64,000 bases of DNA, taken from NCBI GenBank assembly GCA_047495785.1, contig JBLDXI010000009.1:2728001-2792000 (forward strand), given 5' to 3'. Under the pieces are notes generated by a model that was not told where the DNA came from, ran no database searches, and saw only the letters and a list, made by a program, of their open reading frames with translations. A program made the translations under genes and the position numbers. This stretch comes from Lepidodermella squamata (taxonomy: Eukaryota > Animalia > Gastrotricha). This document shows positions 5,633 through 60,004 of this stretch, in pieces (within the stretch, counting starts at the first letter, position 1; every line of letters begins with the position of its first letter).

Positions 5633-7740
5633 TCAAAGCGCCTGCGAAGATGCATTCAGCATTTCTGCATCCACGGCCTGTTTACGGCTGTTATGCGGCT
5701 CGCGTTCGACCAGACGCACCCATACGCCATTTTTCGGCATCATCAACCGCGTGACCTTGACCTTGAGAACGCGATCCGGGCAATCGTCCCCAGCTGGTAA
5801 GACTCGGAACCGGCGAATCAGGTTGATCAAAGTCAGCTTCATCTCGAACAGGGCCAGTCGCATTCCAACGCAATACCTCGGACCATAGCCGAAGCCGAGA
5901 AAGGCCGAGCTTGGGCGAGTAGATGTTGTAGGGTAATCGGGTGAAAATCGATCGGGGTAAAACTCAGCCGGGTCAACAGGCCCCCAGAACTCGGCATTTT
6001 GATGAACGGTCCACATATCAGCGAAAACAAGAGTTTTGCGTTTAGGAACCGGGACACCGCATAAAACTGTGTTTTCAATCGAAAATCGGCTGACGACGAA
6101 AATCGCGATTGGGTACAGCCGGATTGTCTCGTGAACGACCCAATCCAGGTAAGGCATGTGGTTCATCACAGTGTCGTAATCTAGGTCAGCATCAAGGTCT
6201 GGAAATCGAGTAATGGCTTCGTTGTAGACCTTCTCCTGGCAGTCAAGGTTCATCGCCAGGCAATAAGCGGCGTAGGACAAGGTGGCGCTAGTCGTTCCGT
6301 AACCTGCGCCGAAAAATTGAATCGATTGACTGATGATTTCGTTGTCAGTCAGCGGTTTCAAGGGTGGAATCGTGTCGTTATTACTCATATATCGCTGAAC
6401 AGTTTCCGGATTCGATGCGTCAATCAGCATTTGAAGCAAGTCGGGCCTGCGATTTGTCGGACTTTTCCGCCGGTTTTCAATGACATTTTTGCAGACGAGA
6501 GCTAGGGATCGAAATGGAGCCAATACGCCGGAGAAGTACTTCATTTGCAGGACGATGAAGGCCTCGACGATTGGGACGATCTCGGGCAGGCAGCTTGCGA
6601 CTCGAAACATGAGCGGTTCGTTGACCAAAGTTGCGAGGAGGCGTTTGAATTTGGGTAAAATTGGATTGTCCGCCCCTCGATACTTGATCGAATTCAGTTC
6701 GACACCAAAAACCACTTCAGATATTACCTAAAACGGGGAAAAAATTAAAAAAATAACTTAATTTTCAATAAGAAACTAAATTTTGGAATGTACCGTTATT
6801 CGCAAGTTAAAATTCACATTTTCCTCGAAAAATTCTGAAACTTAGGACAAAACTGAGCACGGTAATTTCTGATATTGCAGACAATTTTGGGAATGTTCGC
6901 CTGATTTTTTACAATTCAGGCGTTTGTCTATCATTGGACTCATTAGAGCTCATTAGAGCCTCATTTGCATATTCAACAAACTTATTAATTGCAAGATTCG
7001 CGCTTGAAATACCAGTCGAATTTCGAAGAAAATTACGTCTACTATTTTTAAATATTATTTTAATTTTCGAATATAGGACGTCCGAAACCTTTCTGAACTT
7101 TAGAACCTTTTCTGAAAATCGATTATTTAAATTATTTAAAATTAAATTAGAGAAATTTTATAAAAAAAATTCTTACATCCAGGGTCAAGTACTGAAATGG
7201 CTCGTCGATATTAACCGACTTGTTAGACGCAGCCAACTCAGCCATAAGTTCCATAAATTGTTTCTGGCTCTTCATTATCAGCGGCGCGTAGCTTTTCAGT
7301 TTTCCAGTCGAAAACCCAGGGTTAACAATCGTCCTCAGCCGCTTCCAACGCTCGCCATACACACTGCCGATATTCGAGAACGGCGAATCAGAGTAACGAT
7401 GCGGGTTAGGCTGTACCGGGGCGATTTTGCGGCCAGGAAATGAGTTGAACTGCTTAACACAGAGCCGTTCAATCGCCTCGTCGCTACTCGTCACCAGAAT
7501 TGGCATCGAACCCTCGTAGTAGCCGAAAAACTTGCCGTAGCGCTCGCTCCACGAATGAATCAGCAGATGCCGCTCATCAGTCGCCCAAATTTCGCGTAAA
7601 TTCCCGTAGAACCAATGCGGTTCCGGGCCAGGAATGCCTAGCCGCTTGAAAAATTGATGAGCATAGTAGCGTCGGTACAAGTAGAACGCGGTTACAATCG
7701 TAACCAAAAAGGTTGATAGAAGAGTGAAAAAGACAATCAT
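5633..7740 (-). CDS. Cytochrome P450, clan 3-like (copy 1); exons 7740-7177 and 6727-5633
   Basis: N-terminal TM anchor, GIPGPEPHWFYGNL, WKRLR, ETIR (ExxR), PDRF and heme motif FGYGPRYCVG. GT-AG phase-0 intron at LTLD|VISE. Confidence 0.93.
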
Positions 7741-7935: not shown

Positions 7936-10016
7936 TCACATTCGAGGCACCAGCTTGACCAGCACCGGGCCGACAGGTGTGAGGAGACCTTCGCGGGATG
8001 ACACCCGCAAACCACCTGGTGGGTACCCGCCATCGGGCTCATCGATGCGGTAACGGCGCAACAAGTTAATCAGCGTCATTTTCATTACCAACAAAGCCAT
8101 TCGCGCACCTTAATAAAAATTCAAAAATTTGACCTAATTTGCAAAACCCATGGAAAAAATGATCAAAAGTGCGAATTGTGCGAGCGAGCCTATATTCAAT
8201 CGATGGAGAATTTTCTGAATTATATATCGGTATAAAAACCGACAGGTTATTCGCAAATAGCCCTTTGACATTTGATCATCGCGCGCGGTCCGAAATCTCT
8301 AAAAATGTTGATCACACGTGCACAAAATTCGCACTTTCGCTCACTTTTCTGAAAAAAATCAACTTTTTTATGAATTCAAGTTACCGATGCAAACTCGAGG
8401 GCCGTATCCGAAGCCTAGGAACGCTGAATCAGGGCGATGAGTCGAATTTTCCGGTAGGAATCGCTCCGGGTAGAACAAAGCCGGGTCTACCGGGCCCCAT
8501 AGATGCGGGTCGTTATGAATTGACCAAACATCGGCCTGAACGCAACCCAGCGCCTTCGGAACTTGAACACCACACACCTGCGTGTCGTTTATCACAAATC
8601 GATTGATGAAATTCAGCCCGATGGGGTAGCGGCGTATCGTTTCGCGGCATACAGCGTCTAGATACGGCAGCTTAACAATGGCGTTGTAATCGACCGGGTC
8701 TAGCGAAACGTTCGATTCGGCGATTTCTCGATACAATTTTTCCTGAATCGATTGATTTCTCGCAAGTTCGTAGCTAGCAAAGGCTAGGGTTGTGCTTGTT
8801 GTTTCGTAGCCGGCGAAGAAAAACAGAAACGATTGAGCTTTGATTTCATTTTCACTCAAAGATTTGCTGAGCAAGTTTAGATTTGTCGGCATTGAAATGC
8901 TGCTATTCATTAGCTCTTTCATTGAGGCATTAGGCGAATCGTTGGGTGAGCTGCTTCGAGAGCTCGATTCACTGCCAGATTCGGCCCCATTAGCGGCAAT
9001 CATCAGTTGTAGTAGGTCGATTTGGCGAATATTCGGATTTTCTTTACGATTTTTTATCAATTTTTCAACAAGGTTCAAAAACATGCCGATGGGACCGAAA
9101 ACTCCGAAGAGCAGTTTCATTTGGTGGTCAATAAGGGGCTGGAAATTTAAAAATAAAAAATCAGGAATAGATTAGTTTTTGAAATTTTTAACCTTCAAAA
9201 ATGGGACACATTCAGGTAGGGCAGATAGGAAATCGATTACAGGTTGGCGTTGAGTGGCGTAGTCTAGAAATTGTTTCAGTTTTTCGCCAAGAATATTTCC
9301 CTTGCATTTTGTTCGAATCGCGTTGAATTCGATGCCGAAGCCAACTTGAGAAATAGTTTCCAACGTGAGAAATTGGTAACTTGATCGAATATCAAAAGAA
9401 GGAGATTTTCTGTACAAAAAATTTGCCAATCGGGAAAGCTTTAAGGTTATCAAAAATTACTTGGCCTCTTCGTCCAACGTCTCAATTAGGTCAGTTTGTA
9501 TTTTAGCGACGGTTGGAGCGTAAGATTTCAGCTTTCCAGACGAAAAAGCCGGGTTGACGATAGTTCGAAGACGTTTCCATGTGTCACCCTGGGCAAACAG
9601 CATGTGGCTGAGAGGGTGGTCCGGCTCTTTCGTCGGATTCGGTTGAATAGGATTGATCTAAATAAAATTCTCCTTAATAGCTGGGATTTTCAAAAATTCG
9701 AAAATTCTACCCGATGGCCCTGAAAGTTTGAGAATTGTTTAATACAAATTTGTTCGACAGCTTCAATGCTGCTTGTGACCAGGATAGGGTTCGGACCTTC
9801 GTAGTAGCCGTAAAAGTGGCCGTATTTTTTCGACCAATTAGCAACAACTTCATGGCGATTCTCGGCCCGGAGTTCGCGTAAATTACCGTAAAACCAGTGT
9901 GGCGCCGGGCCGGGAATGCCATGGCGTTTAAAAAACGTGTGACAGTAGAGTTTGCGATACACGTAAAAAATGAATAACAACAAAATTGGTAGAAAAATCA
10001 GTGTGGTTAAAATCAT
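7936..10016 (-). CDS. Cytochrome P450, clan 3-like (copy 2); five exons
   Basis: GIPGPAPHWFYGNL, AGYETT I-helix, ETIR, PERF and FGYGPRVCIG|ARMALL. The last exon ends LVKLVPRM-TGA at 7936. Confidence 0.92.
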
Positions 10017-14198: not shown

Positions 14199-17100
14199 TC
14201 AACCAGATCTGCGCCGCGGATCGCCAACCGCTGCGATAATCGGCACGGGTTGTTCGACGATGTTAACAGTCTCAGAATCATTAGGCTGGTCGACACCGGA
14301 CGGCGCTAGCAGCAGAAAGTCGTTGGCTGACGCCAGTAATTTTATAGCCGGCGCCGTTCCATCCTTCTTCTTAACGCGTTTCGACGACAATCTTTTAGTC
14401 AATCTGTCGCGGAAACTCAGTTTTTTCGTAAATTTCGTAGGCGCCGAAGGCCGGGAGGGCGAAGTTGGCGGTGATGATTGGCGGCGTAGTTCGCCTGATT
14501 TCGACCGATTCCCGACAATGAAACCAAACGCGGCACTTATTTCACCTGCCACCGTTAAATTTCCGGCCGATCGCCCTGTTTTCAACGACTGTCGAGGCGA
14601 ACACAGCGAATTTGGCGATTCCGATCCATTAAAATTAGCCGTATTACTTTGACGGCTCGTAATTATGGAGGGGACTAGACTTTTCGAGAAGCATAATTTT
14701 TGGTGTTGGGAAGTTCTAGATTGCCGTTTAACATAAGTTCCACACGATGATTCGCCACCTGATGATTTCCGTTCGCTAGCCGATGATTTCCTCTCCCGGT
14801 ACATGAGTTCTGAATGGGACAAATCGACGTTATTTTCGGTTAAAATTGCGTGCAATTCATTTTGTTGCTGTTCCATTTCGATTTCGTGCAGAACTTGGCT
14901 GAGCGCACGGCTGACAAGCATGCCGGCAATGTGAGGCGCATCGAAGGAAGCGGAAGATTTAAGGTCACGTGACGTAGATCGACTCACATTCGCCGAGTTG
15001 GATTGAGTTGCCGACGGATCGACGCTTAGAACTGCCTGCAATTTCGGGTTCGATCGCGAGTTTTTGACAAAATGACCTTGACCTTGAGCTAATTGAGTAG
15101 CTTTTTTCTTGCGATAATAACTGCCGCCACGCGACAAAGTTCTCGAAGGGAATTTGCTGTATAAAAATAAAAACGAAAATTATAAGACATTTTATCCCAA
15201 GACTTAAGACAAATAATTATCCCAGACCCCAGACACAATGGCCTAAGTCGTAAACAATTTTCGATCTGCGCCCAAAATAGCATTAAATTACGCGATGTTA
15301 CAGCATGTGCTTATATATCCAGCGACTGATTAGCCGGGTGCAATCGCGCCTTCGTGCTCATCTCTATGACAAAAATGCCTTCGCACTTCTAGCGCGAAAA
15401 AGTTGACCGTTAACAAGTGAAAAGTGGGATTTGACAAATTTTCTGTATTTTCCAGCAAATCGCAAAAATTTTGTTGACTTGAAAAAGGACGATCCTTGAA
15501 TTTTTATTTTCAAATTTCAGAGCTCATATAGGGGCTCCTATCCTCCATAAAAGAAGGTAAACCCCAAAGTGTCGCTGAAAAGTCTTATCAATTCAGGTTG
15601 ATATGGAGACATTAGCTTGATTCCACCGCAAGTTTCCAATATATCTAGCATCTAGCGCACTTCCTCACCTCAGATTACCCTGAAAAATGTGGACAGTAGC
15701 GCATAAAATAAAATAATATTGACAATGAAATGCGTGAGAGATTATTAATTGATGTAACTCCAATTTTTCAGGCGCACATTTTTCGAAATTAGCATTTGTT
15801 AAATGTTAACTTCAAAGCCAAATTTCTCAGCAACCCTGATGACTATCTATTTATTCCTGATATCGTTCGACTCCTCGTTAGTTGATCTTGAAAACGACAT
15901 CAAAACCCCAATTTTCACTTGTTAACGGTCTGTTATGTTATGTCCATGTTATGTCAGTCAGATTTTTATGGAACGCTAAGATTTCCCTCGTGAAAGTTGA
16001 TAACTTGAAACTCGACGCGGCCAGGCTCTTCACCTGTTGAGATGCACTTCCTTCAACTGAACTGTTTTCGACCTTGTTTTCAAGTTGTTGACATCCTGAA
16101 TGTTAAGAAGAGCCAAGCGCTGAAGAGACCTATTCACTATCATAACAAGAAAGAAATCCATGCTTAGCTGGACTGAAATGTCGTTCCTAGTCTTCAGATT
16201 ACCCAGACATTTGTAATAATTTGTTGTGATTGCGGAAAAAAGCTGTCCGGGATGATATCTTCCCGCTTGATTTGAGCTAATTTTTCAAAGGACGAACAAA
16301 ATATCTATTTTGGAAATATAACGTCACAAGGTATAATATTTGACGACAGAAAATACTTCTACACAGGACTTAATCTCAATTTACATGGATTTGTCTAATC
16401 ATGAACCTCCAAAATTTTGAAAATTCATCTGTGCGCGAATTCATTTTTCAAGATTTGGTTTCAAGACCCATATAAAATTAAATTAAATTAAATTAATTAA
16501 TTAAATATAAATTTTATTCTTTGCACTCACCCGGATGGTTTCGTCAGAGTAGGTTGAGAGGACCTGTCCTGAGATTCAAGATTCGCCACGTCACGCTCAG
16601 CGTCAAGGAAAGTTAACGAAGCGGGCCTTTTCGAAGGCTCTTCTACAGCATCCTGTTTAGCGACGTCTTGCTCAGTCTTAACGGCCGTTTCGTTAGCGAT
16701 AGCAATTTTCGGCATCGATCGCCTGTTTGAGCTGCTAACACTGAACTTCGCACTCGACGTAGTTCTCGAGAACCAGTGCGCTATATTCGCGCCGAAGCTC
16801 TGCAAACTCCGCGATGTTCGCAATATTTTTGTTTTCTCGAGAAACGCAGCAACCTGAAGCTGCCGCAGCGATTTCGGGGTATGCGGCTCTTGGTCCGAAT
16901 CTAGGAATGCATCATCATCGCCATCCTCATCTTCGTTATGGCGCGTCCCATTATTGTTAAGTGTTGTAGTAGAATTCGCCTCGCCGCTCATTTCAGCTAT
17001 AAAATCACGCGGGCTCTGAGGTGAGACAACTGAGGGCCGTTTCGAAGACTGGAAAATCACCTCCAAACTACACCCGGTTATACTCAGCCGATGCGGGTAA

Positions 17101-19815
17101 TCACTGGGTGTCACAGCCCGCGCTTCATATTCACCGGCCTCGTTTTGAAACGTCAATATCGTTTTCGCTAGATCAATTTTGCGCCGCGCATAGAACGGCG
17201 CATTTTGATTGTTACCTCTGTTACCATTATTATTCGAAGACGGGTACAGGCGGGACGAGATAGTCGACGCATGCGACGATTGGGAAGCATTGCGGCACAA
17301 GGCGAAATTTCGTAACAGCGACGATATTCCTTGTTTGTACTCCTTAGCCGATAAGGCGTATAGCAACGGGTTGAAGGCGCTGTTTAAAAAGCCTAGCCAT
17401 ATGAATATGTCGAACAGCGTGTTGTTATGAGGTACAGCCGAACGGCCGACAGCTGCGAAAACTAGATTGAGCGCAAAATAGGGTGACCAGCAGAAGACAA
17501 ATACACCGAGCAGCATTCCTAAGGTTCGGACTGCCTTATTTTCGTTGACGTAGTACTGCCATTTCTTGAACAGTTCGCCCCGGCCGAGTGGAGTAAATGA
17601 GGTTACCTGAAATTAAATTATCACGTGGGTTAATTGCAGCCCATAAACACCTATTTTTGTTCGAATTCATCAAATGATAATGATCATCTTTTTCTCGCAG
17701 CATTATGAATAAACACCTATTTCCGGCCGGTTAATTCCATCATTTCATTTATACCTAGTAATAAATAGTCTGTGCGGTTATTAAATTAATTGTGGGATAA
17801 TCATGTAAAAGGTCGGGATTATCGGAACACGCCAGTGTCAATTATAGATATCAATTTTCCTAAATTATATTTTTGATAGGTTGACAATCGATGAATCGCG
17901 TGCAAATCCCTTTTAATAGCTACGATGAATATTTTTTCTAAATATAAATTTTGCGGAGGAAAAATCCCATAAAAATCCTCATTTCATAGAGGTAACTTCT
18001 GTGGCCGGAATGCCCTGGAAAAAATAAGGAAAAAGGGCAAATTTTGTTTGGAAAAAAACATAAAAAAATCTAAAATGATAACAAGTAAAAAAGCCTTGAA
18101 ATTACCAGTTTTTCTATGGTAGGGTATCGGTGCTTCTTCGGCGCAGCCGGCACCATACTAGCCCGTCGGCTGGCAGCACTTATTCTCGCATTGATAGCAG
18201 CCTGTCGAAGTACCGAACTTCGCGTCCTACTACGCCGCCCACACGATGGCTCAACCGACGGAGTCTGAAAAAAGTGGAAAAACTTAGAAAAATTACGAAA
18301 ATTAATTAAGAATGAGGCTCCAACACTATAGGTTTCCTAAAATATGGTGTTTCGATTACGTCATTTAGTTCATGAGATAGTTCTTCAGCCATATCGATTC
18401 AGAGTATCGATTTTACAAATCAGCAATGTTTCCGATTTCAGCTGTCAAAATTTTTCTACATGACTTAGGGTATCAGGTAGATCAAATTAACACATTTCCA
18501 AGGTCAAAGGATGCATCAGAAGAAACCCTTAATTTGGCAAGCATTCAGACTCAAATTAAATACCTCAGTCAGATCAGTATGTTCAGTTGGCTCGTAGCTA
18601 CTCATACTGCAAATACGGCCATGAGCTCGTTCACCGCCGTTTGTTCCCAACAGTACACCATTTTGAGCCGAATCGTTATTGCTGTCATGATTAGCCGAAG
18701 TTTCTTGTTGTTTCGCAGTTCTATTAGTCCTAGCACCGCCACGGTGCATGCGGAAGCTGACATGCCGCCAGTGGCCTGATGGCGATTTTTGAGGGACCAT
18801 TTTCCGCCCACCCTCCTGTTCGCTGGCATCTTTCAACGAATCCAACTGCTTCCGCGCTAATATGTAAATTTTGCAGTAGAATCCGAACATTATCGACAGA
18901 GGAATGTAGAAACAAATTAAGGAGGATCCGATGAGATAAACCGCCGAAGATGGATAGACGCAATCGCCCTCTACGACAGTTTCAATCTCGCCATCGTCGA
19001 AAAATAGCGACGCATTAGGCTTTTGAGTAATCGTTAAAAGGGTCCACTGAACTTCATCGTAATCGTCGTAGTAATAGTTAGGCAATTCATTCTTCTTCTC
19101 CTCGTGCTTTTGGTACATCCAAAACGCGGACATAGCCGAGGCGAGGAAGCTCATGGTCCATACGATGATGAGTTCGGCAATTGTCGCCTTGTAACTAGCT
19201 TGGGTCATGTAGCCGAACGGCTTGTCCAGCGACCGGCAGCGCTCAATGGCGACGATGCAGATGTGTAAAATAGAGGCGGTGCAGGCGAAAAGGCGCAAAA
19301 AGTGATGCATGTCGCAGATGACGTTTTTACGCGACCAGGCGGCTACGTCGGCACGTGTGTGTTGTGTTAAATGAGCTTCGCCAAACGCATCGGTAACTAA
19401 AAAAATTTTAAAAAATTAAATATATTTCCTACGTCTTGTTATTAGGAATAAAGGCAAGAAAAACGTTGGTACGGGATAAAAAAAATACAGGCAAGTAACT
19501 AAAATAATTCCCTTGTACCTGAAATGGTCAAATTAGGATCGCGAACTTTTCATGTCAAAATTTAATAAATTAGTTAAAAAAAAATCCTCGTTAAAAAACA
19601 TCAGACTTACAATGAAGGCCGAAATCGACGACTTTTGAAGTCATAGCAAAAGCAGCGACCAGAATGTCCGCAACGGCCAGCGAGACGTAACAGCAGTTAA
19701 CCGGCGATGGCAGTTTACGGGCGAGAAGTGACAGGACAAGGACGAAAATATTGCCAAGTAGGGTGAACACAATGATGGCGATGAAGAGGATGAGGAGGAA
19801 AAATGCAAAAATCAT
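14199..19815 (-). CDS. Class A GPCR of the biogenic-amine receptor type (D1-dopamine/beta-octopamine-like) with atypical pocket and very long C-tail; ~5 exons
   Basis: TM1 GN, TM2 SLAVAD, TM3 CTASILHIC..ERC, TM5 SSLICFYIP, TM6 ENKAVRTLG..CWSPYF, TM7 WLGFLNSAFNPLLY. Donor GG|GTGAGT at 16531/16530 joins in frame to acceptor TACAG|C at 15156, adding the 14199-15137 ORF. Start codon uncertain. Confidence 0.85.
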
Positions 19816-22800
19816 TATTTTCTCGCTCTTAATCGACAAACAATCAATCCATTTCACATTTCTAAACCGCAAGAGTAAAATTCTAAAATAAAAAATAAAA
19901 CAGCGGGGTATTATAATAATTGAATATTAACTATGAAAAAACTGGAATTCCCCCATAGGGAATATTCGACCTCCAGACAATTTTTTACGTCAATTGAGCA
20001 GTGTCCTTATCGTCATTAATGCGACATAGAAAATTTGAATACTGGGAAAAGAATGCGTCCCCTTGTTCTAATAATTTAATAAAAATAGTTAATTAATTTT
20101 GGTTCCTTTCCTCGAGACTGGGTGCATTTACCTACTCGGAAGACAGTTTAAACCGCACATCATGAACTATGAACTATGAACAAGAATATTTAGGATAAAA
20201 AGATGAATGGCTAGCCTATACCGGCTTGAAATTTCTCGGCGAACTACAATAATAGGAAATTAGCCCGGAATTCCGATGCACCACAGATATACTGAAAATA
20301 CACACGTGAGTGGAACATGTGACAAAAATGTCTAGGAGGAGGAGAAACGGTAATTTTAGAGTTCCTGGTGAATAATGACACTACTTCGACTTGACAGACT
20401 GCTACAAGATGATATAGTTGAAAGATAGGAAGCCCTCGCCCGTCTACGCGTTAGTTTTTTTTTACGCAATCACGGGTTTACTCGTAAAAACACAGCCTCG
20501 CAGGATACAAGCGCATCATCCGATAATTTAGCAAGGAAAAATTGTTTAGTCACTTAACTACGCACTTTTTGCAGGGACGACTGTGACGATATGGTAATAA
20601 TACTAACAAAATTAATTCCTAATACACGGGGCGGATTTTACCACTCGTGGGCTTCGCTTCATGTATTTCGCGAAAATTGTCGAAATTATTATGTCTGAAG
20701 AATTGATTTCGATTGAGTGTACCGTAAGCATTGCTATAGGATACGTATATCTGCGACTTCGAAAAGCGTTACTCATAGGATAAGTGAAGATGATTAAAAC
20801 TGCGTGTAATTAATTTAGCCAGAGTATTTGATCGAAAACGCTGCGTTGAAATATATATCAAAATTTTTCACCTGTGAGCGTCGATCAGATAGATAGTATA
20901 GATAGTATAAATAGTAGTAAGACGGCACAACTTGAGTGTATAGATGGCGGATAATTTTGCAGCGTTTGACTTGGCATGTGATCGGATGCGCGTAAATCAA
21001 GGATAAAATGTGTACATCACTTTTGATCACGTTTCTCTGTGTCTCATAGCGAATCCATTTGAGGAGGCTCGACTGCTATAAAACTAAAAGAAGCTAAGAG
21101 TAAATCGATCCAGCGGCATCAAGGCTACTTGGACGCAAATTCTTGATTTTTACAACGCAGATAATTCCATATAGGTACAAGGAGGGTTTGAATTTTTTTT
21201 GAAAATAAGGAAGAATCGCGAAATTAATGTCTCCGAAATTTTAGTAAAATTCAAATACGTCACGCCCTTTAAACATTGTCTGTCGAAATCGATGTAGCCA
21301 ACTGTCAAAGTTCGTTAACCTGAACGGTTTGACTGACTCACGTTATAGTAAAAGCAGAGCGTCTCATTCGGTAAATCGTCACTTGAATATCTAACGCCTT
21401 TTGCGTCAATATATGCTATATATGCATATATGCTGAGGCAACCTGAAAAACGGACTAATGTTACACTAATGTCACGATAACGCGATTATGATCTGAGCCG
21501 ATGTCAGTCAGCCGTCTTCACCGGAGCGGATAGTCGACCTGTTTCAGGGGGTCGTATTTTTTAAATGAGTCATTGTGCATACTGATTGCGTGATTGGAAG
21601 AAATGTGGAAGAAATATTTAAAATGTGTTGCCAAATAAAATATTTTTTGATTCCGCAAATTTTTTCCCGCCGAAGCCGCTCTGTTTTCAACTAAAAAAAT
21701 TGCTGCACTCGAGCTCAGCGATTACAGGAAAGATTCCATCAGTAACTTTTTTTATTTACATTAACATTTCAATCAATTCCAAAACTTCGAATTTCTAGGC
21801 TTCGAAATTTTATTCCAATTTCCAATATTTTACGTCACATGACCCAGTTGCGTTATTTGCCTGGGCTGGTAAATTGCAGACTCTTTGTCCAAGGAATGTC
21901 CACCAAATGTTGATTAAAATTTCGTTTCGAGCTTTAATTTGATTAGAAATTAACAAAAAACTCGACAAACGATCAGCTTTAATTTGGAACTTGAAATTAT
22001 TAATAATTAACAAGTTACCGTAACGCAGCGTAATAATAAGTTTGGACAGCGCATAGCCCTCAACCCTGGAAATTTTACAGCTTTTCAAGCTGTCCGTTAT
22101 GGGTTAAGGGTTAAGCCAATGGTTATGCAAGCCAACTGGGCTTAAACAATTACCCGCTAATTGTCCGAGGTGAGCTTGCTTTTAATTGATGAAATCTCAG
22201 GTAAAAATATTAGGCAAATTCTCCTTCAAATTTTATCAGAATATTACGAATCACCTTGCACCTTGCCCATCATTTTGTCGAATCGCTAGAGACCGCATTG
22301 GAGCTGATCGAAATTGAAATTGACCCAATTGAAATAGTAGCGTAGCTGAGTAATGGATAATATATTATAAAAAGCCGACCCTTGTGGGTTTATAGGGTCA
22401 GCTGACGGCAAGCGATAAGCGATCAGCTTGGGGACCCGGCAAATCGGTAGCGAGCACTTTGCTGTTACCCATGAATTCATCATCATTCGCTATTCTTCCC
22501 CATTTCTTCCTGCCATATAAGCAATTTCAAGATCTTCTAATTAAACAGTTTTGGTGCATCGTATAGCTGGAGATCAGACTTTTACGGGTTTTGAGCTCCA
22601 ACATGCTCCAATGAGCTCCAAAATAAATGATCGGGTCTAAATTTATATTTTCGAACAACCAATATTGAAATTCTAGCTTGAATTTCAATTTCAATTTCCT
22701 GACACTAAATTTTTCAGATGCCTTTGAATTTTGGCGTTTTCATTTCTTGATCGATGCCCTCCATAGCCGTGAAATGTTTTAATTTAATTTTTATATTTTT

Positions 22801-25800
22801 TGGGACGTGAATTTGGCATTACGGGAAGACGTGAAAGCTACGTTTTAGGAAAATCTTGGGCTGACGCTCCATATAGCTAGTGTTGGAACCCTAAGTTTAG
22901 ACAATATATACTCGTCTCACTGTGTAAACTGAAACTCTCTCTTGCCACAATATTTACTTTGTCTTCTGCCTGAAAAAACCTATAGCATTGGCTCATCACC
23001 TTTGAATATCGTTGTTCCAGCATGCGAATACGTAATAGTATGGGCTTCTTTACATGGAAAATAATTACTTCGTACGCACAGGTTGTCTGTTTGGTAAATA
23101 ACAGCTTTTGAATCAGGTTTTTGTCTCGGAAGAATATAACTTTTTGCGCTGAAAATTAAGAAGGAGCCTTATTTTGGAATCTAACCTCTATTGAGTGGCT
23201 TCAGTCAGATCTGGCTTTTAGAGTTCAACCATATTTTCATTACATTTTCTACTGTCGTCGTGTTTGAAAATTCACGTGATTTTAAAAATCCTCGCTGTTG
23301 ATGAAGGGGGTTTTAGCGAATATTTAATTAACTTGGTCGAATGTTTATTAGATAGATAGATCTTCAGACGGTGCCTATGCCGTGCACTTCAGAAGGGACA
23401 AAAACTATTTTTCGCACCGGGTGGAAGAATTTAAATAATAATATTATGCGAATATTAAGCCTAAGGGACACTTCAAACATTGTTTGTATAATAAATTAGT
23501 CACTCGTCATCGAGCTGCTCTTAAATTCGCCCGAATCCCCTAGATAGCAATGAACTGCTGCTAAAATAAATCATAATTTAGATTTTTTTTTATCAATTGT
23601 CTATTTTTTCGGCTCTACCTCACAACGTCGGTAAGTGCAAGTTTATTACTGACAATTTTCGAAAATTAGGTCATCGCTCTAGGGATTTATTGCTTACGTG
23701 GGTCCGCAGTGGGTCAAATGGTGGCTTCTATGGAATATTGTTTCATTTAATCAGCTATTCCCTTTATGCGTACTTTTTATGCGTTGTAATGACCGTGCAC
23801 ACCGTATCCGCGTTCGATTGATTTTGAAATTTTACAATATATAACAAACAATAAATTGCACAATTATAATAATATTATAACACTATTATTCACCAGCGCT
23901 TGCGTGGCCCTCCATGTTGATTGCTTCGTGCTGTATTTCGCCATGACCTGTATTCACCTACCGTGATACTATGAAATAGTATATGCCCTCAGCCTGTTTT
24001 TCCGGGCACACGTACAGCCACTAAGCAACGTGTGTGCTGACTGCTGCCGCTAAACAATCATCGATATTGATATTATTTGCAGTAAAAATTATTTTTGCAC
24101 CCATATGAATGTCTTGCAGAAAAGTGAATTGTACTCAATGTCCAATTCTATCAATCCGCCTGGTTCTGAATTCTAATAATTATCTCATTTCCTATAAATT
24201 AATAGCTAATCGCTTGTTTTAAAATTAATAATTTTGATCGGATATTTTTTTGAAATCAGGGCTCTCATTAATTACAGTCTAATTAATTAGCTTTAAAACA
24301 GACATATAAAAAATCCCTTCAATGAGGATGCTTCGTGCAAAGAGCTTTTTCGGTTTTTTCTAATCAATCCATACTTATTTTAGCTTCATTATTTTATAGC
24401 TTCAGGCTTCTAAGCTTATATAAGAGCGGATTTTTTTTGTTTCACTTGGCAAATATAGATTCGTCTCATGAGGCCAGCGCCTTATTTGAAGTGAAATCGT
24501 TGCTTCCTCTCACCTTGGTTAAGACACATGAATCTCACACTATGATTCATGCGATTCATAAGAATTTATAGTCCCTTATCAAATTTCATTAATGAACGCG
24601 TGAATTCTTGAGGTATCCCCTAAACATCAGTGCGAGCGATTTAAACGTCTCTTGTTTCTTTTAATAACATCATTTCCCTGTCCATAACAATTCAGCCCAT
24701 TTTAATGTTTTTGAGATCAACTGTACACATTTTATTAGATGAGTCTCTTCAGCTGAAACTCTGAATGTTGGAAGATAAGCTTAACCCCATATCGATTAAT
24801 ATTTAATAATCGCACCTAGGCATAGAGATAAAAAATTCTGGTGAATAGGTTAAATTTTTGCTGATTGCCGATTTTCACGCCTCCTGGGCATTGCGCCTCA
24901 TTACAATACCCCACTTGTGCAGTGTATCGAGATTGATCATTACTGCGAATTGAAAATTATGGCTCAATAATTAAAATCGCTGGATTTCAGCCCACGGCAT
25001 TTGTGATGAAGCTTCGTTTTTTTCCTTAAGGGATCAGGCAAAATACACTGCTCGTTTTTTAATCAACCTGACTTAAAAGGTATGAACGATCTGTTGCCCT
25101 TAACTTGCCCGAAATTAATTACTCGGCTTTTTTAGCTTTTATCGGCTCAATAGTTTTTTTTACTCGAAGCGTTTGAGCGCTTATAATAAAAAAATTCGTC
25201 CTCACCTCGGGCAATTGCACTAATAAGTCTTATTTTAATTTCAAGTTTTAACATTATTAAGCTCGTATTTACGAGTCTATTTTTTCCAATTTGCAAGTTG
25301 CCAGCAAAATTTGATATGAGAGCAAAAGATAATTGATAGGTGTGATGTTGCAAAAATGCGTGGCAATCATGAGGCACGCGGTTGCTAATCGTTAATGAGC
25401 TCTTCATTTTCGCGCTGCGTCCTGATCGCGATATGATCAAAGCGTGCGAACATGAGATAATTGCTTGCGCGTAAAACCTCGCGTATATATGACTAAAACT
25501 TGTTCATCTTGTTGTTATTATTATTGTCATTAATTCAAGCTTTTGATTTCGCGTCGTGTTAAATTGCTTTCAAGCTAGTTCGGAAGCTTGTTCAGTTTAA
25601 TCATAGTCAGAGTTGAAATTTCAAAAATTTAAGCGGAAATTTTTCTCTTCGCTACTTGGGGACAACACTACATGTCATTCCTCTTTAACATCAATCAATT
25701 TTATCTATAGATGATTTTTCTTTGAAAAAATATTATGCTTGCCAGTGCGACAAAGCTGTCGATGTACAGCGCCGATTTAGTTTGTCATTCAACTGCGATT

Positions 25801-25824
25801 ATTTAGCCGCCCTAAAAAGCAGAA

Positions 25825-29998
<4,174 letters not shown>

Positions 29999-33281: not shown

Positions 33282-35205
33282 ATGAAACGACCTGCTAAGC
33301 GAGCTGCATCTGACGCTGGTGATGAGTTGCTGCTAGTCGATGACAACAAAGTCGACGGTGGTAAGCCGAAACAGGCGAAAATGGGCGGTAACAAGTCTAG
33401 CAACCGGACGGGCGGCACCTCAAATGCCGCCGGGTCATCAACACCTTCCCTACCACTCCATGCAAAACTGGCCCATATTCGAGCATCACTCGAGGGCAAA
33501 GAACTGTGGCAAGAATTCGATGAACTCGGAACGGAGATGATTGTAACGAAAGCTGGGCGAAGAATGTTTCCAACTTTTCAAGTTCGACTGTCGGGCATGG
33601 ATCCTACTGCGACGTACACGATTCACCTGGATTTTGTCCCGGTCGAGGATAAACGATTCCGCTATTCGTTTCAAACTTCGAGCTGGGTTGTAGCCGGAAA
33701 GTCGGACCCACACGGACCTCCGCGAATTCATGTAAACTCTCAGAAACTAGATTTGAAACTTTTTCAATCATGTTTATTTTTGCAGTACCATCCTGACTCC
33801 CCTGCGCGTGGGATTCATTGGATGAAACAGGTTGTATCTTTCGACAAGTTGAAGCTTACTAACAACCCAATGGATGAGAATGGATATGTAAGCTCGATGA
33901 CACTGTAATTCGTTTTATTCTATTTTTTTTAATTTTTTTTCAGATTATTTTGAACTCGATGCACAAGTACCAGCCCCGTTTGCACATTTTCTACCATCCC
34001 GATCAAAGCGCCGCCGCGGATGCAAGCAATCCAAGCGCTTCATTGGAGGAAATTACCCGTCGCTATTCGATTATTAGGACGTTCGTGTTTGCCGAGACAA
34101 AATTCATGGCCGTAACAGCCTATCAAAATCAACGCGTAAGTTCTAGATACGTGAATTTCCGCTGGGGACATAACTTAAAATCGGAATTTATTCTAGATTA
34201 CTCAACTCAAAATCGCTAGTAATCCTTTCGCGAAAGGATTTCGAGATTGCGACGCCGAGGATTGGTGAGAAATTAATTTTCTTAATTGATTATGACTAAT
34301 TAGTAAATTGTTTCTAGCATGGCTGAGGTGTTCAGCCATATGAACTCGCTTATCAATAATCCCCTCGCTGCAGCGGCCGTGGCGTCTGTAACTGGCTCGG
34401 CGCCTTCAACCTCCGTATCGCCAAATGATCCTTCAATTAGCAAACGCGCGAAAGGTATGCGTAATTTAGTAGTAAAAAAAATCATCCCTGATGAAAAAAA
34501 ATTCTTTCAGGCGGGAAAGATGGGTCGAAAAATCGTGGTAGCCCAACAATGGTCGGCCATCATCAGCACTACGACCAGGGGAATAATAACCATTACAGCC
34601 AACACCAGCCGACTGATTATTCCTGCAATAATATGGCGCAAAATCACCAGGCGTTTGGAAATCTAGGCAATTCTAGCGATCCGTCAGCGGCTGCTGCGGC
34701 TCTGCTGGTCAACCAGGCCGCGGCGCTGAGCCGAGCCGCTGTTGCCGCCGCTGCTCTTTCGAGCTTCACACAGGGTGCCTACAACGTTCAGCCGTCTCAG
34801 TCCACCCTGCATCAATCGGGCGGCTATGACCCATCAGCCATGCTCGCCTCGGCCTGGCAGCAACAACAGCAGCAACAACAACAGGCCTACAGCGCTTTAG
34901 TCACCCAAGCTCTGGTGGCGAAAAGTAACAACACCGCGAAATTAGCTCATTCGCCTAATAATTCGGGTGGCTATTACGGTTCGAAGTTTTCCGGGAATGA
35001 TCAACCCTTGGCGCTGACCAGTGGCGCCAGTACCGGGTCTATTTCCGACCTAGCGGCTCCGATGCCGTCGTCGTGCCTCTCGTCGCCGTCCGGCGCCTCG
35101 ACAGCCTCTTCTTCATCGAACCACCACCAAAGTTCATCTTATAGCGACACTAATTTACCAGGCACTCTTATGTCATCGGCCAATGCCGCTGAAAACGATA
35201 ATTAA
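33282..35205 (+). CDS. TBX1: T-box transcription factor, Tbx1/10 (org-1/mls-1) subfamily; six exons
   Basis: [109 protein letters not shown]; Ala/Gln/Ser-rich tail. Confidence 0.93.
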
Positions 35206-42229: not shown

Positions 42230-43366
42230 TTAGAGAGCCATCAGCGATTCAGGAACCCGGCAACCGTAGAGAAGTCGCCAACTGGGTGGAATTTTCCATT
42301 GCATCTGCTCTGGGACGAATAATTTGCCGCCATGTAGCCCATCTTGGTCTTCCTCATCGACATCAAGCAATGAAGGGGTGGGCGAAGAGGCGGTCGATAG
42401 ACTCATTCGAGATCCAGGGGCTTCTAAGCCGATCAATTCCAGGCAAGAAGCGAGGTGATTCGCCAAATCCATCGCATCTGGCGCGTTATCGCCCTCAGAG
42501 CAGAAGCGGAGTAGGATGAGACACGAGAGTTGAGCCTCAATCGAGCGGCGGTACAACTCGCCGGCAAAACCACCGCCAGGAATTGAAATTTTCTCCGACT
42601 CATGTTCATATTTCATCGACTCGCCGAAATTTTCCAGAAATCGTTGGCCAACAGCGGTTTTCATCGAATTTTCATTGCCGAGCCAACGAACTTGCGATTT
42701 CGTACGTAAATCCGCGTCAGATCTCGAGAATGCAAAGGCGGACGTGAGGCAAATGACTGATTCGATGCCGAATTGTTTAGAAAATTCGATCAATTCAGCG
42801 ACAAATTTCTTCGACTGGCCCTTGATAACAGCAGATCGCAGTTGAATAACAACCCATTGGAAGTCATGATTGACGTAGACATCCGCCGCGGTACAGATCG
42901 CGCTCACCCCGGCGCCGAATGGGTTTGCGCCGACGACCGGGACCAGCGCGCTTGAACACAGCCATCCAGCCAGTTCGAACTTGTGACTTTTCGTGTGCTC
43001 GCTTGAAGTTTCAGTCGCAATTTTACCAGTAACAGCGCGACGTTGTGGTAAATAAATGCGATCGTGCGATTCGCCGCTTGTTTTCAAGGCGCCTGGGGCT
43101 GAAGAAATCGGTGGGCGAGCGGCGTCGGGCGAAGGCGCTGGGAAATTGTTATCGACTTTCTGAATTTTTGCGCCATTTTTAAGTGCAAGGCCAACTGGGT
43201 CGGTTACTTTGCAGGTGGCTAATAGCAAATCGACGGCAAGCTGGCCGACATTTCCGTAAGAGACTGATGGTATTACCATAGTATAGCCGGTCAGATTTAA
43301 AGGCCGGTCGGCATCGCTGGCCTGACGAGGGTGAAAAATAGACGATGCTGCCGTTTCGATGACCAT
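42230..43366 (-). CDS. PSMG2: Proteasome assembly chaperone 2 (PAC2)
   Basis: LTGYTMVIPSVSYGNVGQLAVDLLL, LVPVVGANPF, VIQLRS, IPGGGFA, LLRFCSEGDNAPDA, WKIPPSWRLLYG. The first ATG (~43366) is used as the start. Confidence 0.92.
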   Translation of the reverse strand: MVIETAASSIFHPRQASDADRPLNLTGYTMVIPSVSYGNVGQLAVDLLLATCKVTDPVGLALKNGAKIQKVDNNFPAPSPDAARPPISSAPGALKTSGESHDRIYLPQRRAVTGKIATETSSEHTKSHKFELAGWLCSSALVPVVGANPFGAGVSAICTAADVYVNHDFQWVVIQLRSAVIKGQSKKFVAELIEFSKQFGIESVICLTSAFAFSRSDADLRTKSQVRWLGNENSMKTAVGQRFLENFGESMKYEHESEKISIPGGGFAGELYRRSIEAQLSCLILLRFCSEGDNAPDAMDLANHLASCLELIGLEAPGSRMSLSTASSPTPSLLDVDEEDQDGLHGGKLFVPEQMQWKIPPSWRLLYGCRVPESLMAL

Positions 43367-45169
43367 TGTTTGTTTCGTAATATTATCAGTTATCACTACA
43401 AACACATCAACAACATGATAATAAAGAAGATGCGAGTGCGCGAGGCCTCAACGTTAATAACTAGGTTACAGGAAGTATAGTGCGCAATTGCTTGGGTGGT
43501 AGCCGTGTGGGCGGTTGAGGCCGTTTCCCACGGCCTCGGCGTGTTCCAAATAGGCAAGTACAATCAAATTTACTGTTGTTTTGCACGAAACCAGTGTTCG
43601 ATTTCTTAACATCGAATTTTAGATCGAACTAAAACGTGCATCTGACATAAAAACATTTCTAAAATTAGCTACGCGCTCAATTATTACAGGACTCAAATAG
43701 GTCATCGGCTTACAATGAAATAGACCAAAATAAGTATTACAAAGCGGTCAATCAACAACAAGCATGCAATCTTTGGAAATAATTCAAGCTAAGCTGGTCG
43801 TATTTGAAGCCGCTTTTCTGGCAATCACTAAACTCAGATGATCGCTGTCAACAAAATTGAAATGGCTGCATCGAAAACTTGGTAAAAAACGGCGCAGAAG
43901 AAAACAGGCTGAGAGGGTCAAATGATCTAATATGTGATATGTAGTATTACATTTTTATACCGAATTCCGAATTACCAGTTGTCTGGAGTTATCCAATCTA
44001 CATTTAAATGTGAAACAAATCGCTACGCAGAGGAAATGCAAGACTGGCGAGGAACACATTTTTAGTAGACTTTTAAGCCAGTTGCTTACTTCAAGAATGA
44101 ATTCATGCAACAAAGAAAATGTGCATCGAAACAATGGCGCGCTTTTATTTTTAGTTTCGCGAAAAGAAAATGATGAACATCGTGATGCGAACAGATGAAT
44201 GGTCATAACCCGACGCACTGCAACAGCAAAAATCACTCAGCATTCTGCCATGTTAAGTTGCAGCTGGTTCTAGCCTAAAATACGCAGCATGTGCCTTGCT
44301 TGCTCACAGCTTTTTCTATAGAAATCAAAGTCACTCCTCAATCCGTCGGATATCGGAAATACTTTTATACATGCATATGAATAGATACCTAGCTGACAAC
44401 TCAATTATTAAAATTTAATAATAACTCCATATCGTAGTTCGTGGTTTTGCAAGGTTAATTCATGTTCGGAAGTGGTAGGAACAGATAGCGCGTTAAGTTG
44501 ACGATTTCACGGCCAAGATTCTCCCGATTGGATATCAAGATTAGACAGTTTCCCCTTTCATTTCGTGAATTTAGATGCCTTCCTGATAGCTGACAAGTAA
44601 AGATGGTCGGTATGAATTAGACATCGGTAAAAATAGTTAGGCACATCAACAAACAAGCTCATTGTACAATATTATGAAACCTACCAGATCAGTTATTGAC
44701 TTTAATCAGCATCGCTTGATACGCTGGCCTATATAAGTAAGTATATCGCACACAGACTGTATTGTAATATAACCCAACTGATAACCCAGTCATAGCCATA
44801 AACCTAACATATAACAAGCGTGAATAAACTGAATAAACCAAGGGCGAATGAAAAAATCAAAAGAACCTGGATCCCGCAGATGCTCTTTGGATGAAGAAAG
44901 CTAGTATATATTTCGCTTTATCAATGAAGTCGGCATAATCCTAGGGTTAAAGCTTTAACACCAGACCCAAGGTGGATTCTGCAACACGAGAAATATCCTA
45001 AAAAGTCCTGAGACCAAAAGTAACTACTTAACCACTTTAGGCTTTTAGATCAGAATCCATCATCTTAAAACCAGAATCAACCGTTGAAGGTGAAAGGACC
45101 AGCGACCAACGCAGTCGCCGCGAAGAGCAGGGGAGAGAGGGATCCCGTCCCGACCTGGGCAAACAAAAA

Positions 45170-58619: not shown

Positions 58620-60004
58620 TCAGGAGGATCCGTGGAACAAGGCGCTGTAAATCGACAACACCTGCTCGAAAGGGAATTTCGCTTCATTGCTGTGAGCGGC
58701 AACTGCGGACGACGCCAGAGAAGAAGATGCGACTTCATAAGTGGCGACTGGGCGATGGGGCTGGATAGGCTTATTCGAGCCTCTGTCGCTGCTATCAGGA
58801 AAGCTGCAAGTGCTGTTGTTGCCACTACGCAAATTTTCGCGATGGCACCGGCGTCTGTGCATGTAAAGGTAGCTCACCGAGGCGAAAAAGGTTCCGCAGA
58901 ATTCGCAGTTGAATTGGCCAGAGCTAGAGCTGCTGCTTGCCTGCATTGATCCAGTCACTTGTTGCGACTTGTTATCTCCACTATTTGCGCGGCGGCCGGA
59001 TGAACATTCGCCCAGAAAACAGATTTTGCTTTTGATATGTTCCGTCAGTGAACGCTTGTGCTTGAAAGCTTTTTTACAAGTTTCGCATTGAAATTGCCGC
59101 CCAACTGTATGTACGTAGCGATGCGCGAAAAGTGTAGACGCCCGAGCGAATCCTACAAATAAAATATTTATCATTTTTGAAGTGGATTGAAAGCTTTCAG
59201 ACTATTTTCAGACTTGAAAACGCATGTCTCAAAATATGGAAAAAATATGGAGTTGAAAATTTGAGTAAGGTACACAGAAAGCGTCGTACCTTTTCGGCAA
59301 ATTTCGCAGACGAATGGACGCTCCTTGCTGTGGGTCATCAAATGTTGGGTCAAGTAATGCTTCTGCTTGAAGTTCGTTCCACAAACGTGACAAGAAAACG
59401 CAGCGTTGCTACTCGTTGATTGCTGAGATTTCGTATCAAGCTCCGCCGCTTTGACCTTTTCTTCCTGATTAGCAATAGGTTGATCGCTTGACTCCAGTTT
59501 CACTTGATCCGGGGCTTGACGAGCTGGTATATGAGCCATTTCCCTATGGAGTCGGAACAACTCTTCACCCTTGTAGCTTTTGAAACAGATATCGCAGGTG
59601 AAAACAGGTCGATCTGGAGCGTGAATCAGCCATTTATGCCTTCGAAGGTGATAGGCGTAGCGGAAAGCTTTCGGGCACGCATCACACGGAAATTCTTTCG
59701 GGAATTCAGACTCGGACTGGTGGATCTTCTCGTGGCGGCGTAGCTTGCTCGGAAATCGAAACGACATTCCACAAGCTTGGCACTTGATCTTGGCCGCAGT
59801 TTCCGAAACATTACCATCGCCTGATAATTCGGACGCTGCCCGACTTGAGGACAATACCATGGAAATTGGTTCATCGTCATCACTGAAAGTAACCACGTCG
59901 ATATGCCCGTCGTCATCGCTCAGGTCATCTTGATTCCGATTGGTATTGCTGCTCGAGGAATCACTTCGACTGCGTTTCGAAGAAACAAACTTATCATCGA
60001 TCAT
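58620..60004 (-). CDS. C2H2 zinc-finger transcription factor (~7 fingers); exons 60004-59290 and 59152-58620
   Basis: CQAC..HEKIH, CDAC..HKWLIH, CDIC..HREMAH, CHVC..HLMTH-SKERPF, CEICRK|GF..HRYVH, CETC..HIKSKIC and CEFC..HRRRCH. Confidence 0.9.

Follow-up and report, generated by a model that had tools for sequence, protein, structure and literature searches.

An aminergic-descended orphan receptor of the gastrotrich Lepidodermella squamata with arginine at position 3.32

Aminergic-like receptors that lack the aspartate at position 3.32 are already known in other forms. The schistosome SmGPR clade comprises biogenic-amine-like receptors with Asn3.32 as well as SmGPR-3, which keeps Asp3.32 and responds to dopamine (PMC3289605). 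In teleosts, trace amine-associated receptors (TAARs) with an altered amine-contact site in transmembrane helix (TM) 3 show a mode of amine recognition that is not the classical one (PMC4695389). A basic residue at 3.32 together with an acid on the pocket face of TM7 is found in CXCR1 and CXCR2, according to a study on these receptors (PMC10425996). Here we analyzed a stretch of 64,000 nucleotides from the gastrotrich Lepidodermella squamata (contig JBLDXI010000009.1, positions 2,728,001 to 2,792,000; called the window throughout), which holds on its minus strand a gene for a class A G protein-coupled receptor (GPCR) with arginine at position 3.32. The encoded receptor and its single orthologue (P0002) make up an orphan clade of two members that descends from aminergic receptors and has the charge reversed at position 3.32. 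Literature searches on Arg3.32 in aminergic receptors and on rotifer amine receptors yielded no account of such a receptor.

Like the SmGPR clade, the present clade is lineage-restricted, belongs to a small spiralian group and lacks Asp3.32; it differs in that the schistosome position is a neutral Asn, whereas here the charge is reversed and a second conserved basic residue, a lysine, lies in the pocket. Aminergic descent and an altered TM3 amine contact are shared with the teleost TAARs, but in the present clade position 5.42 is Ser or Tyr and position 3.32 is cationic. CXCR1 and CXCR2, being chemokine (peptide) receptors, are related only as members of class A, and the candidate acid in the present clade is located at 7.36, its pairing with Arg3.32 being putative.

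The codon for residue 3.32 reads CGC, as established by a gapless count back from R3.50 over the stretch from Cys3.25 to Cys3.51, and a phmmer search against all PDB chains places this arginine opposite the dopamine D1 receptor's Asp3.32. An assembly slip is ruled out, as contigs of a public DNA run (X2) span the codon without any difference listed there. The DRY motif is replaced by E3.49-R3.50-C3.51 (GAG-CGC-TGC), and TM7 reads W7.40-Leu-Gly-Phe7.43, with TTT as the phenylalanine codon, followed by LNSAFNPLLY. A preliminary description of the locus had reported all three of these features, which our reading reproduces. It had also stated that Ser5.42 and Ser5.43 are retained, which is correct for the gastrotrich gene (S5.42, S5.43, C5.46 and P5.50 in TM5) but does not extend to a conserved set of catechol-type serines, the orthologue having Tyr5.42 and Ser5.46. 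Its proposal of a paired change at 3.32 and 7.43 stands insofar as both positions are altered; the pairing itself is loose, with Phe7.43 here and Leu7.43 in the orthologue.

The Asp3.32 counter-ion, replaced by Arg in both species, and the Tyr or Trp at 7.43 that characterize functional aminergic receptors are thus absent. Further anchors are replaced as well, namely Trp3.28 by His and Pro2.59-Phe2.60 by Thr-Ser, with Lys at 2.61, while C3.36, T3.37, S5.43, W6.48, F6.52, N6.55 and W7.40 are kept. The activation elements are intact: N1.50, D2.50 with S3.39, N7.45 and S7.46 (the sodium site), I3.40/P5.50/F6.44, E3.49-R3.50 with E6.30, W4.50, Y5.58, CWSP(Y/F)F and NPxxY. Of these, R3.50, E6.30, the I3.40/P5.50/F6.44 triad, Y5.58, CWxP, NPxxY and the sodium site are also conserved in the orthologue. 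Since all of these elements are present, the protein is a signalling-type receptor and not a decoy and, as judged by these motifs, is signalling-competent. We also considered that ERC might represent a dead DRY switch and rejected this: both R3.50 and E6.30 are intact, and there are relatives that have Glu3.49 or Cys3.51. Overall, the gene probably encodes a functional receptor that descends from aminergic receptors without being a classical amine receptor itself; canonical sensing of monoamines has almost certainly been lost.

Descent, rarity and maintenance of the receptor

Descent from monoamine receptors, claimed before as an aminergic type, is supported by PDB matches, a motif in intracellular loop 3 (ICL3) and a phylogenetic tree. 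The 60 PDB matches listed for the exon encoding TM3 to TM5 and the 60 listed for the exon encoding TM6 and TM7 are all monoamine or trace-amine receptors, bar one engineered D1 variant, and include D1, alpha1A, beta1/2, 5-HT1B/D, octopamine beta2 receptors and TAARs. The aminergic signatures of TM3 (C/S-T-A-S-I), TM6 (FxxCWxP(F/Y)F) and TM7 (W-x-G-x-x-N-S-x-x-N-P-x-x-Y) are present except at 7.43. The neighbours that carry a name comprise 'dopamine receptor 2-like' proteins from echinoderms and from a scallop, along with receptors of the alpha1-adrenergic and the 5-HT1-like types. In ICL3, the motif [LF]R[IVM]HRGG, which reads FRMHRGG in the window and FRIHRGG in P0002, is present in the Dop2-like matches; of the two named alpha1 matches that of Engraulis has the motif and that of Myxine does not, and the 5-HT1-like matches lack it.

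In a maximum-likelihood tree built on the TM3 to TM5 exon alone, the gastrotrich receptor and P0002 are joined with 100/100 support; the stem of the pair measures 3.83 substitutions per site, its two tips 0.18 and 0.52. The pair attaches by this very long stem at the unresolved base of the motif-bearing, Dop2-like polytomy with no supported sister, and a group with 98/98 support that contains the 5-HT1-like and alpha1 matches excludes it. The combination of a long stem and short tips suggests that a phase of rapid change gave way to constraint. The ICL3 motif links the pair to a putative origin from an invertebrate Dop2/INDR–alpha1-adrenergic-like monoamine receptor.

The best sequence neighbours are the Dop2/INDR receptors and the alpha1 and alpha-adrenergic-like octopamine receptors. 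The clade has in common with this group the HRGG motif, Cys3.25-Asp3.26, His3.29, C/S3.36-T-A-S-I, F6.44xxCWxP, N6.55, W7.40-x-G, N7.45-S7.46, E6.30 and the KA-x-(K/R)-TLG start of TM6. It differs from the group by Arg3.32, by Phe or Leu instead of Tyr or Trp at 7.43, by His3.28, Thr-Ser at 2.59-2.60 and Ile7.39, as well as by the absence of the S5.42/5.43/5.46 triad and of an N-terminal tail and by its stem of 3.8 substitutions per site. A divergent member of the HRGG-type group that also lacks Asp3.32 is encoded by the bdelloid rotifer Adineta ricciae (P0063/P0170; CAF1686532.1, CAF0779044.1). This receptor shares the FACTASI stretch in TM3 with the clade and has its own ICL3 motif, VRIHHGK, and ERY; in contrast to the clade, it has Asn3.32, keeps Tyr7.43 and reads NVLVY at the NPxxY site. 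Its branch in the tree is long and does not group with the clade, and the receptor may have lost the amine anchor independently, as a second such case among small spiralians.

How rare the altered residues are was assessed among the 150 best relatives, taken from an exhaustive search with phmmer in which exon 2 was compared to 1.84 billion representative proteins. Position 3.32 is Asp in 143 of these, Asn in one (A. ricciae), Gly in one and Arg in P0002 only, which is also the only one of the 150 with ERC; the change thus exceeds what chance would give. Glu3.49 occurs as ERY or ERF in 14 of the 150, and DRC is found as well. At 7.43 the relatives have Tyr (68), Trp (17), His (5) or Phe (3), so that Tyr or Trp is found in 85 of the 93 that could be read. 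Pocket residues that set the clade apart and are the same in both species comprise Thr-Ser at 2.59-2.60, Lys2.61, His3.28, Asp7.36 and Ile7.39 (Thr in relatives). Lys2.61 and His3.28 are rare in relatives, whereas Asp2.64, Asp3.26 and His3.29 are ancestral and kept.

P0002 is the only match of orthologue grade in the exon 2 search (E 2.7e-57, about 50% identity over the matched stretch; next matches E 4e-16). Its gene, found on three ENA metagenome contigs, holds TM1 to ICL3 in one open reading frame (ORF) and TM6 and TM7 in the next. It shares Arg3.32 and ERC, and 31 of 37 residues of TM3 are identical. The preliminary description had proposed to examine position 3.32 in orthologues and had named Asp in all of them as evidence against its reading; the sole orthologue has Arg, so that this check came out in favour of the description. 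Conserved in both species are Lys2.61, Asp2.64, His3.28, His3.29, Asp7.36, Ile7.39 and ERC, along with an EGDC sequence in extracellular loop (ECL) 2. Synonymous sites are saturated between the two genes (proportion of differing synonymous sites, pS, 0.77–0.90; of non-synonymous sites, pN, 0.18–0.35). Hence, the shared residues have outlasted a long divergence.

No third member of the clade was detected: a word-index search with P0002 at E<=1e-10, insensitive in this setting, returned only P0002 itself, and two scans of JGI metagenome contigs with clade-specific TM3 and ICL3/TM6 peptide patterns yielded no further relatives. A word-index protein search with exon 4, which is insensitive here owing to its length window and the huge database, gave one fish receptor, and nothing significant for the TM6–TM7 part.

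The gene is real, expressed in an RNA-like run and selectively maintained. A public run labelled as probable RNA (X1) covers the receptor exons and leaves introns and flanks empty; its depth is near zero at intron 1, two of the three introns (1 and 3) appear spliced out in its contigs, and its coverage stops in bin 16434-16567, around the AATAAA signal. Sixteen of the 17 exonic differences between the window and X1 or X2 are synonymous. The remaining one, at position 17366, is a conservative exchange of Leu7.51 in the window (NPLLY) for Met in both runs (NPMLY). One could suspect that the gene is a pseudogene in decay or an artefact of assembly or annotation, as the known orthologues number just one and intron 2 has the status of a prediction. 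Given 758 open codons over four exons, spliced RNA, the 16:1 ratio of synonymous variants, intact microswitches and a matching orthologue, we consider this extremely improbable and have rejected it.

The charge-reversed position 3.32 and possible ligands

As a favoured, albeit tentative, explanation we consider that Arg3.32 may provide a cationic site to which a small ligand would bind with its acidic group. The preliminary description had already put forward an anionic ligand, alongside a self-liganded or constitutive receptor; its interpretation is supported in part, and both ideas are hypotheses. Carboxylate and nucleotide receptors of class A typically employ a TM arginine or lysine. Since Lys2.61, His3.28 and His3.29, located in or near the pocket, are conserved, an electropositive pocket is plausible. 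In the corresponding scenario, a Dop2/alpha1-like monoamine receptor would have been remodelled in a single evolutionary burst, and Arg3.32, aided by Lys2.61 and His3.28/3.29, would form a cationic site for a carboxylate, sulfate or phosphate. Candidate ligands would be, for instance, amino acids, nucleotides or amine derivatives that are acidic or conjugated, and their binding would move TM3, TM6 and TM7 as in any class A receptor. In its most complete form, with a charge-inverted clade in which Arg3.32 and Lys2.61 together bind a small transmitter or metabolite by its acidic group and a scaffold that switched its chemical class in one burst, this scenario is rather unlikely.

Several observations weigh against an anionic ligand. 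The two species have different residues at 3.33, 5.42, 5.46, 6.51 and 7.43. Of 22 pocket positions, 16 are identical, a share close to the TM average (identity over the TM core is about 65%); conservation alone therefore cannot separate the ligand readings. Because only two members are known, conservation of one residue is weak statistics. In addition, the conserved Asp7.36, Asp2.64 and the EGD preceding the ECL2 cysteine could neutralize Arg3.32 internally.

The last point leads to a self-locked or constitutive receptor, in which Arg3.32 would form a salt bridge with Asp7.36, Asp2.64 or the Glu-Gly-Asp of ECL2 in replacement of the Asp3.32–Tyr7.43 link, and which would signal without a diffusible ligand or be opened by an agent that breaks the bridge. 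Asp7.36, shared by the two species, does not rank among the six residues that the relatives most often have at this position (Ser, Pro, Thr, Lys and Arg are common), positions 7.36, 7.39 and 7.43 should lie on one helical face by helix geometry, and the ECL2 sequence EGDC is conserved. A comparable, possible Lys3.32–Glu7.39 bridge is described for CXCR1/2 in the study mentioned above (PMC10425996). However, TM3 in its upper half and TM2 at its top show very strong conservation, as would fit a binding site in use at least equally well, and an intact E6.30 and R3.50 typify a regulated receptor and not a constitutively active one. On balance, such a lock appears unlikely.

The acids at the pocket rim could instead serve an amine. 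In a non-canonical amine receptor the counter-ion would be Asp7.36, Asp2.64 or an ECL2 acid, by analogy to the teleost TAARs and the schistosome SmGPRs. TAARs without Asp3.32 reportedly compensate with Asp5.42. The conservation of the rim acids and the seven aminergic pocket residues kept by the clade (from C3.36 to W7.40, listed above) are in line with an amine ligand. Yet an arginine, unlike Asn or another neutral residue, places a fixed positive charge where the amine would lie, and Lys2.61 adds another; moreover, 5.42 is Ser or Tyr and not Asp, and both Tyr7.43 and Trp3.28 are lost. We regard retained amine binding of this kind as improbable.

An acidic small ligand, as favoured here, also has to be weighed against repurposing for a peptide or another non-anionic ligand, with Arg3.32 as one contact among many, as for the basic 3.32 of some peptide receptors. 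The very long stem speaks for a wholesale change, ECL2 is long with 55–65 residues, and Arg or Lys at 3.32 is mentioned in papers on GnRH and RPCH receptors. This possibility is quite unlikely in our estimate, as the deep pocket is still aminergic in its shape-defining residues, ECL2 is poorly conserved between the species and there is no N-terminal ectodomain. With regard to the latter, the start methionine aligns with Met1 of the orthologue (70% identity over 67 residues), and no upstream N-terminal coding exon was seen in positions 19882-26000. An in-frame stop lies 15 codons upstream in the orthologue and both proteins open with Met at TM1. Hence, the receptor is predicted to be essentially devoid of an extracellular N-terminus.

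Gene model and neighbouring features

The coding sequence runs from 19815 to 16527 and comprises 758 codons (758 amino acids) in four exons with an open frame throughout, as obtained by sequence reading and piecewise translation (Table 1); the span of 17380-19320 given in the preliminary description is only a part of it. Exons 1, 2 and 4 match the Pfam family 7tm_1 (PF00001), exons 2 and 4 above the cut-off, and all seven class A reference residues (N1.50, D2.50, R3.50, W4.50, P5.50, P6.50 and P7.50) are present. The model of intron 2 is based on flanks that are both in frame and on the homology of exon 3 to the orthologue's uninterrupted ORF, no read joint being listed. A tblastn search of the exons against the window revealed no paralogue.

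Table 1. Positions of the receptor gene parts and of other features in the window
Feature	Positions	Strand	Remarks
Exon 1	19611..19815	-	start ATG 19815-19813; TM1, ICL1, TM2; translation and Pfam 7tm_1
Exon 1 residues		-	N1.50, D2.50, Lys2.61 AAA 19635-19633, Asp2.64 19626-19624
Intron 1	19397..19610	-	GT..AG, phase 1, 214 nt; exact junction in X1 contig ends
Exon 2	18564..19396	-	ECL1, TM3, TM4, ECL2, TM5, beginning of the long ICL3 including FRMHRGG
Exon 2, TM3		-	Cys3.25; His3.28/3.29 19307-19302; Arg3.32 19295-19293; ERC 19244-19236
Exon 2, ECL2 and TM5		-	acidic long ECL2 with EGDC end; S5.42, S5.43, C5.46, P5.50, Y5.58
Intron 2	18265..18563	-	GT 18563-18562, AG 18266-18265, phase 0, 299 nt; predicted
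Exon 3	18106..18264	-	53 ICL3 codons, ending in the conserved RYPTIEK[LM]
Intron 3	17607..18105	-	GT..AG, phase 0; 499 bases skipped by X1 contig joint 17606->18106
Exon 4	16527..17606	-	conserved ICL3 end, TM6, TM7, helix 8, tail of ~270 amino acids, stop TGA 16529-16527
Exon 4, TM6		-	E6.30, F6.44, CWSPYF, N6.55
Exon 4, TM7		-	Asp7.36 17411-17409, Ile7.39, W7.40, Phe7.43 17390-17388, NPLLY
AATAAA polyadenylation-type signal	16513..16518	-	9 nt past the stop codon; sequence read
Cytochrome P450 match	5633-6715	-	ORF, E 7e-54
Cytochrome P450 match	8368-9120	-	ORF, E 4e-47
T-box DNA-binding domain	33282-33908	+	ORF, E 1.4e-40
PAC2 (proteasome assembly chaperone) family	42230-43405	-	ORF
C2H2 zinc finger	59171-60004	-	ORF

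The orthologous gene (L001:7597-9656) has a single intron of 63 nt at the position of intron 3 of the window gene. Introns 1 and 2 have no counterpart there and hence were gained or lost between the lineages. Synteny between the window and the P0002 contig was not found, apart from a weak kinase match 8.5 kb off and on the opposite strand. ECL2 of the gastrotrich receptor contains at 19072-19045 a Y-Y-Y-D-D-Y-D-E run that resembles tyrosine-sulfation sites and is not kept in the orthologue. Within intron 2, positions 18391-18423 resemble a mobile-element fragment or a repeat of high copy number: the X2 DNA depth reaches about 20,500 (bin 18310-18443) compared to about 90 nearby, and many loose contig ends lie on both sides. 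Among the other ORFs of the window, the two neighbouring ones with cytochrome P450 matches are probably exons of tandem P450 genes. The window has a G+C content of 41% and no Rfam matches.

Meaning for the aminergic receptor family

No predictor of monoamine binding in GPCRs is as dependable as Asp3.32, and an annotation by homology only would label the present gene a dopamine, adrenergic or serotonin receptor. With two members only, both from poorly characterized organisms, the significance of the clade is limited. The opposite charge at 3.32 and a second conserved basic residue nearby, in a gene that is conserved, expressed and maintained by selection, nevertheless amount to a natural experiment on the range over which an aminergic pocket can be re-tuned, and the long stem with its short tips makes the pair a clean case of episodic neofunctionalization of a neurotransmitter receptor. 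The ligand, once found, would tell if inverting the charge leads to a switch of ligand class or to an internal lock. If the ligand does prove to be anionic, a monoamine scaffold would have been turned into a receptor for another chemical class in a little-studied invertebrate lineage.

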